Assembly: GCA_009103225.1 (NCBI GenBank)
Contig: RHPI01000671.1
Coordinates: 405,651 to 469,650, forward strand
DNA: 64,000 nucleotides
Direction of reading: 5' to 3'
Source of the DNA: Chlorokybus atmophyticus
Lineage: Eukaryota > Plantae > Mesostigma and Chlorokybus algae
Shown: positions 27,813 through 35,175 of the stretch, in pieces
Layout of the letters: the number at the start of each line of letters is the position of its first letter
Numbering within the stretch: position 1 is the first letter of the stretch
Notes under the pieces: model-generated
Database searches by the model: none
The model's input: only the letters and a program-made list of their open reading frames with translations
Told to the model about the DNA's origin: nothing
Position numbers and translations under genes: made by a program

Positions 27813-29363
27813 TCACTCGTCCGCTGCGCGTTCGGCGAGGTTGGCCGTGTTCTGATCGGCGCGCTGCTCGTTGTAAGGGAGGAACTTGCCGTTGAGGGTG
27901 ATGACGACGCGATCCTCGCCATCGGAACCTTTGACCTTGTCTACCGCGCAGAAGAAGTTGATCGCCGACATGCTGAGAGAGAGAGAGAGAGAGAGACACA
28001 CACGCATGAAGAGAGAGGGCAATGATGTGTATGTGGGTATGCATGTGCGCACATACACACACATACACACACACGCACATGCACACGCGCAAGCACGGAC
28101 ATGCACACACACACGGACGCACACACACGCACGCACACGCACGCATGAAGAATCTGATGCCGCAGTTGTGTCACGTTGTAATGTATACTGATGTATACTG
28201 ATGTTTTTCAAGTGTGCTTACATGCCGTCTCCAAACTTCTCGTTGATGAGCTCCTTGATGGCCAGGGAGTAGTGGTTCATGGCCTCGCGCAGACGATACA
28301 CCTGTGCATCGCGTTGAGGATTACAAGATGCACACATGCAACAACAACAACAACTTGAGAGCTCAACCACATGACTGTGTTGCATGTGCAAGCAACGAGA
28401 CTCACGGTTGGGTCGTGGACAATGCGCTCGTCAAAGGTGCGCAACGGAGGCTGCAAAACACAAAGAGAGAACCAAACAGGTTGAGGAGAAGTTGTGCACA
28501 CGAGCTTTGATGCGTGCGTGCTTGCGGATGCGTGTGCGTGTGTGCATGTGTATGTGGGCGCACGCACACACGCACGCACTTGTGCATGTGCTGTTTGATA
28601 TTTGATACATGCACCACGATAGAATGAACCTGCAGATCTGTCTACCCCACCTTGCTCATCGTCGCAACCTGCTCATCAGTCAACGCCGGCACCGCCTTCT
28701 TCAACTTCTCTGCCCATGCATCAAGCAATTATCAACAACAACAATCGACCAACACACAAAAACCACTACAACAGCGTGTATCGATGACTCGCACATGGCT
28801 TATCTGTTAGCGTACCTGCTGTGTGTGGTTTGAGCTGCGCCTGGTTGAGGAACAGCTGCGCGGCGTATGCGTTGGTCACACCCAACTCGCTGGCAATCTG
28901 ATCAAACGACTTGCCGCTCTTCTCCTGATGGGTATGTGCAAGTGTATGTTGGCATGCGTGTTTTGTTATTCGGTGCGTCTGTTTGGTTGGTGCGCATGCA
29001 GTGCAATCCTGCTGATTATCATGAACCCAACGCAGAAGCTATCTGACCTTTCATGCAGTCATGTCCACTTTTGTCAACGTCATTGTTCACGATAGTGAGA
29101 TAACGGATGGGCATAGCAGAGATCATGCATAGCAGCATATCGTGCATATATTACAAGCGTGCATGCATGCATGCAACGTGCATGCGCACGTGTAAAACTT
29201 GCATGCATTGTGTGCCTGTTTGTTTGCACGGACGCAAAGGTGCAATGCATGTTGGGACTTCGAACAACACCTCTTGATTTTTGCAACATTTTCGAGTGAC
29301 AGTAGAGTAGTGGTAGAAGGCTGAAAGCATGCAGCCAGTCGGTCAACTCATGAATGTAAGCAA

Positions 29364-29430
<67 letters not shown>

Positions 29431-29816: not shown

Positions 29817-32800
29817 TGGCGGCAAGCTGCTGGTGGTGACGTGGGCAGCGGCGGTGAGGGCGGCGCGGTGTTGGTTGGAGCTGGCGAGGTTGTGGACGAC
29901 CTGGTTGTGGGACGCCTGCTCTCGGCTGACGTTCAGGCTCTTTGTGTGGGAGCTTCGCGCCTGGCGGCTGTTGACAGGTGACTTGACGAGCTTAACATTC
30001 AAGAAAGAAAGTCAGCTGCTTTCTCCACATGCTGTTTTGCATGTATGCTTTTGCTGTTTAAACCTGCCGGTTTTCTGTCGCAAAGTATTTACTTGCAGCC
30101 AGGTGGATAATGTTCAAGGTAACAACTGGTTTGCTGTTCCTCACGTGGTGACTGCACAAAATTGAGCCAAATGAAGAAGCAAGCATGAAACGCAGTGCTT
30201 GCTTTCCATTCCGTACGCTTGTGGCAGACGTGATGACGTACAATAAACCAGGCAACATCAACTGAGCGCATGTGAAAAACAAACAGGTTGCCTCCTTGTT
30301 GTGAAGCCTTGTGTTGCCACAATTGCGTATGCCCGCGTTGCTGCATGTCCGTTATTCTAACAACAAAAATGTTCGTAGGCATGTCGCTTTGTCATTACGG
30401 CTATCATGTGCATGTTGCAACTGGTGCACATCTCACATGCTTGTTAGAGCCGGTCATCAGCGATCCTATTGCAACGTGTGTCGATTGTAATATGTGACGT
30501 ATGTTTATGCAGTACATGCACACAGTTAGGTGCAGAATGGATGACACTCAATTAGTTTCCAACCGCATTACGCGTGTGCAGATGAATGGGAGATGATTGG
30601 CTGGCGCTTGACAAGGCCGAACACGTCGCATTCTGTTTCTTCTGCACAATCGCTGGTTACTTCATTGCACGCATCGCGTGCTGCGGGTCCCGCGCTTGCC
30701 AGCACCGTTGGCGACTGATTTTTGGGACAGCTGTTGGGTCACTGGTAGGGTAAGTGCAACACTTGCATGCTGTTGAGTCTCTCACCTTGCACTGGCTAAG
30801 CTCACAGTGCACCCATACCAATTGTGGTATGTCTGCTGGCAACAGGTTGTTGAAGGAAGCTGGTGACTATTGGGGCTTATGGCCAGGCATGCTGTCATTG
30901 AAGGACTTGGCCGCTGACGGGCTCGGGTGCATAGCGGCCACAGGTGTACTCTGGCTCTACAGTCGTAATCGACAACCCAAGCGAGAGCTTCCATTGTGAG
31001 ACAGAAACTGCATAAGGTGGGTTGGCTTGACAAGTCTATCATATGTTTATGTTGTTCGAGCCTGCATCTTGTCTGATGGACTGGCGTGTGCGTGTGTTGT
31101 GTCCTCAGATGACGCGGTGGGGCGCACACTCCACCACCGCGGCATCCGTCCCAACAGCCCCGGCCTCTTCTGCGCTGTTTTACCATGGGGCGAGCGGCGG
31201 TGCAGCCGCAGGCAGCAATTCAGTTCGCACGCAACAGGTGTGTGTTTGGTCATGGTGTGTATGTTGTCGCCGTCATCAACTGAAGGTACCATGACCATGA
31301 ACTCGATAACGAGCAGGTCAAAGCGATTCTTTCCCGGGTGGCACATTTGGTCCCGGCCGCGCCATGGCAGATGCCGCTGCAGGCTCTTACGCAGCTGAGA
31401 CAGCTGCTGTCGGGCTCAGCCAATATTAGCATAGAGATGCAGGAGCAGGTGTGTTTGCACGGTGTGTGCGAGCACGCAATGTACAACCCATCTTGCATGA
31501 CACAATCTTGTGACTTCTGCGTGGTTGCAGGTGTTTGCTCTGTTGATGCGGATATTTGCCGCTATACAGCATCAACTCACACGCATATCGAACGGGAACG
31601 TGCCGGCAACGGACCCAAGCTTTGCCCAGGTGCTGCATCACATGCACGCACGAACCCACACGTGCGTATGCAAACACGCCCATGCGTGCGCACCATAACG
31701 CACACGCAGTGGTTGCTGGAGCTGAACCAGTTGTCGTGCAGATCCGCACCGTGTTCTCCAACTTGAACCCCGTGACGCAACAAAGGATGTCGGCTTACTT
31801 CAGTTCACAGCGCTGCTTGTCCATAACGCTCGTGCTGTCGCAGTGCTCGATCCTCATTCGTGACATTGATATGTACAAGGTGAGTATTGGTTTGTATCCT
31901 ACCAGTGATCCTGTACACCTGCCAGTGTTACTCACTCAATGCGATGTTGTCTCTGCAGTTAACACATGGTTTGCTAGAAACAACTCCTGTGACGCCCGCG
32001 ACACCTAAAAATCTGGACTCCACGCCCGCGACTGCGCCCTTCCGGGACGTTCTCAGCTGCATGCGCCAGCCGTTCCCGCCAGCACGCAAGCAGCCGATGT
32101 CGCCGATCCCCGCCGCTTTAGTTGGTATGAACGAGGGGCGCGTGTTCATGTTGCTGTCCACTCCAGAAGGCATCAAAGAGCTGGTGAGAGAGTCATCTCA
32201 TGTGAACTTGTTTGTTTTCCCAACACTCGGTTAACACAAGGCTTAGTAAATGATGTTCAGGTGGACACATTGTCAACAAAGCGATTGGAGCACAAAGAGA
32301 CAAGCATAGCGCGAATTCGCCAGGCAAATGGTGACAGTGATGTTGATGTGTTGACGTCTACTGTCTCGCTCAAGTGCCCGATCTCTTGCGCTCGCGTTCA
32401 GGCAAGCGCGTGAGGCTGTTGGGATTATTCTTGTCATTAGGCTAGGCGCAGAGGCGTGACTCAATGCTGGTTTGCAGGTTCCCGCTCGCACTGCACAATG
32501 CACTCACACGGCCTGCTTTGACTTGGCCACGCACATGATGGTGAGTCCCCGGACATGCAAGACAGGTTGCTTGCCATGTTTAACTCGTAGCTTGTTTGTT
32601 ATAATTGTAAATACATGCGTCATACAGTTTGTGATGTTGTCAGTTGCCTGCAGCTCAATGCCAGCTTGATGAAGATGCAAGCGCAAGGCAAGAGGAAAAA
32701 GGACATGTGGACGTGTCCAATTTGCCGCAAGGCTGCCAACTGGCGGCACCTCATCGTCGACGAGTTCAGTAAGTGCTGCTTGTGGTGTGCACAAATCTTG

Positions 32801-33917
32801 CCATTCTGCAGAGTGTGTCCATTAACAATGGTCTCAACCCCTCATTTCTGTATCCCAGTCTGGTCAATACTCCGGGAGACGTCCGAGGACGTTTGCGAGG
32901 TGATGGTGCAGCCGGATGCCAGCTGGAGTTTGCCCGGCAAGGGCAAAGTTGTCAAGGGCGAGAATGCTATAGCTGTTGTGGACTTGTCATCTGAGACGTC
33001 TGAGAGGAAGAAGCCACGCATGCTTGCGCCAACTCCATTGTCTGCTGCGCCTGTCGTGATCGACCTCACGGACACGGACGAGGAGGCGACTGCTGTAATT
33101 GATGCTGATGATGTAAGCTCGGATGATGCGACTACTCAAGAGTTGAGTAGCGTGCGAGAGAGTGAGGATACGGCGGGCACACCTGACTGCAACAGCAGTG
33201 CTGTACAACAACAACGACAACAGCGTGTGAAAGAGGAGGCGGTGGAAGAAACGCCAGCCACTTCTGGCGATGATGAAAGTGAAGGTGGTGATCGGCAGTC
33301 GAGACCGCACCTGAATTGCATTATGGATCCGGCCGAGGTTGAATACCGTAATGCGGTGATGTTGGAGGTGCAAGAGGCAGTCCTGGCACAGATGCAACCA
33401 AATCCACCACCGGAGGCATTTGCAACGGTACAGCCATTCTGGTTTGGGCAGGCTTTAGCTGGTAGCACATATACCCCTAACGATTCCACGTCTTCGCGCG
33501 TGCTGTATGAAGCCGACGTTATGCGCGAGTTGCATAGCCCCCCGCCATCCCAACCCAACAATCCCCCTGAACCGCTCCCAAGCTGCATCCCGAGTCCAAT
33601 GTATGTCCCGACGATTGTGAACATCAACACGGCTTCTTATGGCGAGCTGCGGCAGCTGCCAGGTACACGCGCATGCGCGCGTGTCCTGAACATCAGTAGT
33701 AGCGCACGCCCTCACAGCGCATTCACCAACCAGCACACTTAACATAATATCTCGTCGTGTTCTCGCAGGCATTGGGCCAATTCTTGCCAAGGCGATAGTG
33801 GAAGGCCGACCATACTGTGAAGTCCGCGATCTGCGCTTGGTACGAGGCTTCGGGCCGATGCATATGATCAAGCTGGCGCACAGGCTGGCGGTTGATGACT
33901 CAGGCGTCCCAACATGA
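29811..33917 (+). CDS. MIZ/SP-RING zinc-finger protein (PIAS/SIZ-type SUMO E3 ligase-like) with SIMs and a C-terminal ComEA-like helix-hairpin-helix domain; 5' end uncertain
   Basis: VSLKCPISCARVQ | VPARTAQCTHTACFDL | ...WTCPICRK...LIVDEF; SIM-like IAVVDLSSE and PVVIDLTDTDEE; VNINTASYGELRQLP | GIGPILAKAIVEGRPY..VRDLRLVRGFGP; TGA at 33915-33917. Confidence 0.85.
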
Positions 33918-35175
33918 CTTTAAGGCGTAGCGGGCATGTTGCTCTACGAGTCTGCATCATGTTCAATCAGGTGGAGCTGAAGATTGAGGGTAGCTTAATT
34001 CTAATCACATAGCAAGGATATCAGCGGCGGCTACACAGCATGCCAAGGCTGGGGTTGATGAGTCGTGGAGGCAATGAAGGCATCATTGTTTATGGCATGG
34101 TCATGGTTGTCTCATCATCTTCTGTTTTGTCTCTGCCAAGCTGCATGCCATGGTGGTGGTTACCGCTGGTCAATGTTGGAGCTTGCTAAGTAGACAAGGA
34201 GTTGTACAGATGAAAACGAGTTGCACTGTTTCACAGGTATGTTGTTTGAAACTGTTATTGAAATGGGGATGTTTGTCTATATTCCAAAGCTTGTTGAAAC
34301 TCCTGGGAATGATTGGGTCGTTAAATTAATAATATAAGGGAAAAGGCATACACACGCGTGGTTACTGTTTACCTAAAGAAGCAAGTGCAGGCAAAGCTTA
34401 TGCTGAGCAATGCACTTCGGGCACTCAATTGCTTTGAACGCTTGGCGCAGTGTGGCTGGTGCAATTGTGGCGGTGAGGTGCTCCCAATGCGCAACGGTGC
34501 TTTGTGGTGTAGCAGTGTTGAGGTGCGTGTGCTTGGTGGCAATGTGGCGGTATAGTAGTGTGAATGTACTAGCAACAACGCTGTACGCATGTAACTCGCA
34601 TGTGAGATATGAACATCTGTGTATCAGGAGTGTTATGTAAGCTTGACAGGATACTCGCTGCACTCCGTCAGCTGTACAAATTGTATGCAACGGCTGTACT
34701 GTATACATCAAAAAATGCATGTACTGGTGCCACACCCGTCACGGATGTACAGAAAGCCGAAGCTCGATTGCAGCATGCACATTCCTGCCTTGCATGCGTT
34801 GTACATGCTGGCGCAGAGAAGCAAACACACCAGTCTCACCCAAACACGCATCAATGGTTGACCACACCAGGCTGCAACACCCACACCTAATACTATACTG
34901 TGTGTGCTGCAATGAGTTATTGCCTCTGTGCCACGTCGCGGCAGCATTGCTGTACCCAAGCAGCACTCAGTTCTGGTGCATCGTTCCTTACCTATGAGCC
35001 ACATCAGCTCAAGCATGTACAGACCAACAATGGAGATGTACCATATCCTGGAACTGCCTACGGGAGCACCTTGGGGTCCTTACCCTTGTCCTTATGTGTG
35101 AGTTATTTGCAAACAGGTTTGGACAAACAGGAAAAATGCATATGGAGCTTCAACTGCTGCATTCCACACGAGGGC

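Follow-up and report, generated by a model that had tools for sequence, protein, structure and literature searches.

Can the catalytic core of a SUMO ligase be joined, in one nuclear gene, to a helix-hairpin-helix (HhH) domain of the ComEA type, and if so, what kind of ligase would result? The question is raised by a locus in a 64,000-nucleotide (nt) stretch of the Chlorokybus atmophyticus genome (assembly GCA_009103225.1, contig RHPI01000671.1, positions 405,651 to 469,650 of the forward strand; this whole stretch is called the window, and all positions below refer to it). A first-pass annotation of the window, made from its letters alone, had proposed an SP-RING protein with a C-terminal ComEA-type HhH domain. 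We consider it fairly probable that the locus is an expressed nuclear gene for a noncanonical SP-RING SUMO E3 of the Siz/PIAS family, about 664 amino acids (aa) long, that would be tethered to DNA by its C-terminal HhH domain rather than by SAP.

The joint presence of the two domains was traced through spliced sequence data. Two sequencing runs from two studies contained the locus (56 to 60% of the sampled words), and each yielded one contig (2711 and 2516 nt) for positions 30400 to 34300, identical to the window. Both contigs cover 30579-34236 on the plus strand, span 12 exons, and lack the same 11 introns; because these introns have been removed, we take the contigs to be derived from RNA. 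With its short GT-AG introns, the region is of eukaryotic character. The junction 33662/33769 and all junctions within the SP-RING are carried by both contigs. Since the former joins the long exon 11 straight to the last exon, which encodes most of the HhH domain (Table 1), the HhH domain and the SP-RING lie on one transcript. All elements named in the first-pass annotation are found at its positions or close to them, and the HhH exon does belong to the ligase transcript, as that annotation had supposed.

SP-RING core and putative SUMO-interacting motifs

Full-length domain and structure searches were run on the deposited model of the gene (Chrsp21S03355, or P0001; 750 aa; EukProt EP00898 Chlorokybus atmophyticus, JGI Chlat1 3127). 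This model is two residues (VQ) short within the SP-RING and begins with 88 foreign residues. The RNA-supported exons were scanned one at a time, with the three plus-strand frames read. Pfam zf-MIZ matched residues 364 to 421 of the deposited model with 36.5 bits against a cutoff of 33.5 (E value of 4.3e-9). The SP-RING is split over exons 8 to 10, and the exon scans recovered zf-MIZ positions 14 to 33 in exon 9 (E value of 7e-6) and positions 36 to 49 in exon 10 (E value of 0.0046). Such continuation of profile positions across introns, found for HHH_3 as well, is expected of one domain split by an intron.

A search of solved structures with residues 329 to 478 of the deposited model returned PIAS2 (4FO9, 2.2e-14), Siz2 (6U75, 3.5e-14), PIAS3 (4MVT, 1.8e-11), and Siz1 (3I2D, 9.6e-7). 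The alignments take in the helix ahead of the RING, both ligand pairs (C-x-H and CPxC), and the SP-CTD as far as its terminal (D/G)SW. The single zinc site has the form C-x-H ... C-x-x-C, with QCTH and CPIC matching the ligand positions of PIAS2, PIAS3, Siz1, and Siz2. The SP-CTD follows directly after the RING, and its HLIVDEF...DASW segment is aligned to the SP-CTD end in 4FO9, 6U75, and 3I2D. The RING loop holds an 11-residue basic insertion in exon 10 (GKRKKD, 32687-32704).

Exon 11 continues with three motifs resembling SUMO-interacting motifs (SIMs): AVVDLSSETSE (32972-33004), VVIDLTDTDEE (33053-33085), and AVIDADDVSSDD (33092-33127). Acidic SIM-like motifs had been reported here from the sequence before; their presence is upheld, but they number three and not two. 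The best match to a PIAS-type SIM is VVIDLTDTDEE, in which VVIDLT is followed by an acidic run and whose core we take to be that of the PIAS SIM. The linker beyond is acidic as well, with 39 D+E against 16 K+R over 225 aa. The protein thus resembles PIAS1-4 and Siz1/Siz2 in its set of four zinc ligands, in the (D/G)SW that closes the SP-CTD, in a VIDLT-type SIM with an acidic stretch behind it, and in a C-terminal tail that is variable, and it differs from them in its RING-loop insertion, its C-terminal (HhH)2, and the absence of a detectable SAP or PINIT. The catalytic half is probably an ordinary Siz/PIAS module that works like one: the SP-RING with its one zinc site would bind the SUMO-charged E2, and the PIAS-type SIM after the SP-CTD would hold SUMO. 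Two basic patches, GKRKKD and ERKKPRM, suggest a nuclear location. An MMS21/NSE2-type ligase was considered and rejected, as zf-Nse scored 17.3 bits against a cutoff of 27 on the deposited model and was weaker there than zf-MIZ.

The N-terminal targeting modules that usually accompany a Siz/PIAS core, SAP and in plants also PHD, were not detected. SAP, PINIT, and PHD gave no Pfam match in the single exons or in residues 89 to 330 at E values up to 10, nor on the full deposited model, which agrees with the earlier remark that no SAP or PHD is evident. The part encoded by exons 3 to 7 starts with low-complexity sequence and has a region that is probably helical and a stretch rich in proline. Before the RING, only the linker helix aligns to PIAS2. 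A single-sequence AlphaFold model of residues 89 to 470 had a mean pLDDT of 38.7, too poor for fold searches.

The lack of detectable SAP, PHD, and PINIT, together with the three SIM-like motifs, would also fit a real fusion in which the SP-RING served mainly in PIAL-like SUMO chain formation (E4) or scaffolding and not as a substrate E3. Plant PIAL1 and PIAL2 are described as SP-RING proteins that build SUMO chains, lack SAP and PHD, and rely on SIMs (PMC11371177). We regard such a role as unlikely here, since sequence similarity among the solved structures searched is highest to PIAS2 and Siz2; PIAL is compared by its described features. To our knowledge, no HhH domain has been reported for a PIAL protein, which also speaks against this alternative.

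The C-terminal helix-hairpin-helix domain

The HhH domain is encoded by 33617-33662 and 33769-33893 on the plus strand, with a phase 1 GT-AG intron inside the first hairpin (LPG/IGP). Pfam HHH_3 matched residues 687 to 740 of the deposited model with 45.9 bits against a cutoff of 27 (E value of 6e-12), so that a Pfam scan of this model finds zf-MIZ and HHH_3 both above Pfam's own cutoffs. In the exon scans, HHH_3 positions 6 to 21 fell in exon 11 and positions 22 to 64 in the last exon (E value of 3.9e-4). Both G-h-G hairpins, LPGIGP and VRGFGP, are intact. The closest solved structure is the ComEA-related Thermus protein 2DUY, with an E value of 1.4e-12 for the whole domain and 1.3e-7 for the last exon alone, followed by human EEPD1 (3.6e-5) and ComEA 8DSS (1.8e-4). 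A model of the last 75 residues, built from an alignment of four bacterial relatives, was of moderate confidence (pLDDT of 62.8, 68 to 79 in the core). It superposed best on 2DUY (Foldseek TM score of 0.83, root mean square deviation of 1.7 Å) and on ComEA 8DSS (1.0 Å), with Tex, PsbU, and the DNA-binding tail of KIF22 among the lower-ranked matches. The earlier assignment of the domain to the ComEA type is therefore sustained by both profile and structure matches.

To 2DUY and 8DSS the tail is related by about 52% identity over 60 residues, by the EGRPY turn, and by the two hairpins. Its setting is different: ComEA-related proteins are small bacterial stand-alone or membrane-anchored proteins of DNA uptake, whereas here an intron-split HhH domain forms the tail of a eukaryotic enzyme. 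ComEA proper, with its N-terminal membrane anchor, oligomerization domain, and role in DNA uptake, has the HhH domain alone in common with the Chlorokybus protein. A small (HhH)2 appended to a eukaryotic protein is known from the C terminus of KIF22/Kid (2EDU, a fold match) and from EEPD1, but the partner is a kinesin motor in the former, a nuclease in the latter, and a SUMO ligase here. In a scan of bacterial genomes with the HhH domain, the nearest matches were scattered metagenome-assembled genomes at 41 to 55% identity, among which no donor could be named. The intron within the domain and this modest identity to scattered bacteria argue against contamination or recent transfer.

In Siz2 and PIAS1/4, the tether to DNA is SAP, and Mms21 within Smc5/6 is stimulated by DNA; an HhH domain doing the job of SAP is for these reasons the most economical reading. 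The long acidic linker leads to the C-terminal (HhH)2, which would bind the DNA backbone without sequence preference. By tethering the ligase to DNA or chromatin, it may promote SUMOylation of DNA-bound proteins, the role that SAP has in Siz2 and PIAS1/4. The protein may serve as a chromatin or DNA repair ligase, as the first-pass annotation proposed.

An HhH domain might instead serve as a protein interaction or structural module without DNA binding, as in PsbU, which matched the tail in Pfam (E value of 3.7e-4), in the sequence search of the Protein Data Bank, and in fold. We think this quite unlikely: the ComEA-type match is far stronger (1.4e-12 for 2DUY against 0.007 or weaker for PsbU in that sequence search), both hairpins have been kept, and PsbU acts in the thylakoid lumen, a compartment where a SUMO ligase would have no business.

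Reading frame, upstream open reading frame, and deposited model

After splicing, a single frame stays open over 680 codons, and exon 3 begins with the first ATG of that frame. The RNA-supported open reading frame (ORF) of 664 aa thus runs through exons 3 to 12, from the ATG at 31109 to 33917, with the stop codon at 33915-33917. A gene start at 32340, given in the first-pass annotation, lies well inside this coding region and has to be abandoned. A spliced upstream ORF of 105 aa is present on both contigs; it encodes three hydrophobic segments, matched no Pfam family in a scan at E values up to 10, which leaves a YfiM-like label unsupported, and makes the mRNA look bicistronic. A 4-codon ORF (ATG at 30582) overlaps the start of the upstream ORF. 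Two genes or a chimeric assembly, considered as the origin of the locus, were ruled out, as the two independent spliced contigs agree.

The deposited model departs from the contigs at two places, at donors 30946 and 32396. With donor 30946, of which neither contig makes use, the ligase gains an in-frame N-terminal fusion of the first 88 residues of the upstream ORF. With a GT donor at 32396, a GC-AG intron is missed and VQ is lost inside the SP-RING. This intron (32402-32477) is seen in both contigs, and GC-AG is the sole canonical choice among the five allowed cuts. The splice has independent support because the deposited model shows a two-residue gap at this point against the PIAS and Siz structures. 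The Chrsp21S03355 gene model therefore appears to be mis-spliced at two places. Were the 750-aa protein nevertheless the true product, the ligase would begin with a hydrophobic, membrane-like segment spliced in from the upstream ORF, and the existence of the JGI model and the availability of a GT donor at 30946 can be cited for it. We give this little credence, since both RNA contigs continue to 31016, beyond the stop of the upstream ORF, and the model is in error at the GC-AG intron too. That the gene is a decaying, nonfunctional, lineage-specific duplicate with domains still recognizable, to which the missing ortholog, the divergent N terminus, and the position behind a long upstream ORF might point, is hardly credible given a 664-codon frame intact over 10 exons, the conservation of the zinc ligands and both hairpins, and expression in two independent data sets.

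Table 1. Exons and other transcript features of the SP-RING/HhH gene (exons 1 to 12 have canonical cuts)
Feature	Position	Strand	Content or basis
5' leader exon	at least 29920..29977	+	mapping of the loose 5' ends of the two RNA contigs
Intron after leader exon	29978-30581	+	604 nt, GT-AG; CAG fits both junction sides
Exon 1	30582-30749	+	
Upstream ORF	30586..30997 (intron 30750-30845)	+	105 aa, spliced, on both RNA contigs
Exon 2	30846-31016	+	
N-terminal coding exons (3 to 7)	31109..32183	+	RNA junctions
Exon 3	31109-31237	+	N-terminal coding
Exon 4	31317-31448	+	N-terminal coding
Exon 5	31531-31629	+	N-terminal coding
Exon 6	31742-31879	+	N-terminal coding
Exon 7	31959-32183	+	N-terminal coding
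Exon 8	32261-32401	+	helix before SP-RING and first part of SP-RING (SLKCPISCARVQ); ends at GC donor
Exon 9	32478-32540	+	middle of SP-RING; zinc ligands Cys 32499-32501, His 32505-32507
Exon 10	32654-32768	+	end of SP-RING, start of SP-CTD; zinc ligands Cys 32714-32716, Cys 32723-32725
Exon 11	32859-33662	+	SP-CTD (to 32929), three SIM-like motifs, acidic low-complexity linker, first HhH helix/hairpin from 33617
Exon 12	33769-34236	+	last coding exon and 3' untranslated region
Last coding exon, coding part	33769..33917	+	rest of (HhH)2 (to about 33893), short tail, stop codon
3' untranslated region	33918..34236	+	as far as contig X1 reaches

The end of contig X1 at 34236 lies at a strong donor-like CAG/GTATGT (34232-34242); a further intron in the 3' untranslated region is possible, or the coincidence may be due to chance. 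(GA)n microsatellites are found upstream of the gene at 27975-27996 and 29368-29427. Several introns contain CA/TG-rich simple sequence (e.g., 31450-31530 and 31630-31740), which gives rise to long His/Thr- or Cys/Val-rich pseudo-ORFs.

Relatives and significance

For Chlorokybus, a 2024 Plant Cell survey of SUMO systems across plants assigns Chrsp6S07487 as the canonical SIZ1 and Chrsp31S04804 as HPY2/MMS21 and reports no PIAL (PMC11371177). The alignment rows of Chrsp6S07487 in the supplement of that survey carry SAP- and PHD-like sequence, and Chrsp21S03355 is absent from the 41 supplementary files searched. Because SIZ1 and HPY2/MMS21 are at other loci and Chrsp21S03355 is unlisted, the gene described here is an additional SP-RING gene, most likely for an extra, lineage-restricted SP-RING SUMO ligase as judged from its sequence. 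It belongs to the same catalytic family as plant SIZ1 (SAP-PHD-PINIT-SP-RING) and is a separate locus lacking SAP and PHD.

Relatives with the same architecture were sought in several ways. An exhaustive search of 1.84 billion representatives at E values up to 0.001 returned only the deposited model, at 97% identity, with a 383-aa genomic ORF as the query that held half of the SP-RING and 16 HhH residues, so that distant proteins of the same architecture could be missed. Word searches with this stop-free ORF (candidates of 206 to 670 aa) and with the HhH and SP-RING regions of the deposited model (candidates of 412 to 1312 aa) found the protein itself alone. Feature searches of the ESM Atlas gave no usable match, and a metagenome scan found no relative. 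Two further sequencing runs from a single study contained only 4 to 6% of the sampled words and may stem from relatives such as Mesostigma viride or sibling Chlorokybus species. A literature search returned no paper joining SP-RING, SUMO, and helix-hairpin-helix, joining zf-MIZ with HHH_3, or naming Chrsp21S03355. The combination of an SP-RING with a ComEA-type HhH domain on one protein was accordingly met in no other protein or paper by searches of limited sensitivity that included no domain-architecture database, and within that limit the original suggestion that this is not a described type of SUMO E3 holds.

Several observations weigh against an expressed, DNA-tethered Siz/PIAS-type ligase. 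The two sequencing runs are recorded as "RNA? (a guess)," and their RNA origin is taken from the removal of the introns. On both contigs, the 105-aa upstream ORF precedes the main ORF, and a spacer of 17 nt separates its stop from the ATG of the latter. The N-terminal 240 residues could conceal a PINIT or SAP-like helical-bundle fold that has diverged. The organism's own protein was the sole sequence that the searches for relatives retrieved. Finally, PsbU has a fold like that of the HhH tail and does not bind DNA.

The DNA-tethered ligase can also be read more boldly. It might stand for a third class of SP-RING SUMO ligase in streptophytes, so far unlisted, in which a bacterial-type (HhH)2 DNA clamp has taken over the tethering to DNA from SAP, an independent route to DNA-templated SUMOylation, and it may be the second cistron behind a small hydrophobic protein. 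We put this forward tentatively.

SP-RING SUMO ligases are few and are viewed as architecturally conservative (SIZ/PIAS, MMS21, and PIAL), with specificity thought to come largely from the site of tethering, and group SUMOylation of repair proteins is driven by SAP-mediated DNA binding. Unless activity or orthologs can be demonstrated, the gene stays a curiosity of a single lineage. It adds an unlisted SUMO ligase, with a corrected gene model, for an early-diverging streptophyte alga that is used in reconstructing the ancestor of land plants. If SAP has indeed been swapped for an unrelated DNA-binding fold, the protein would favor the view that selection acts on DNA tethering and not on the SAP fold itself, and it would offer a compact natural module for probing that idea.

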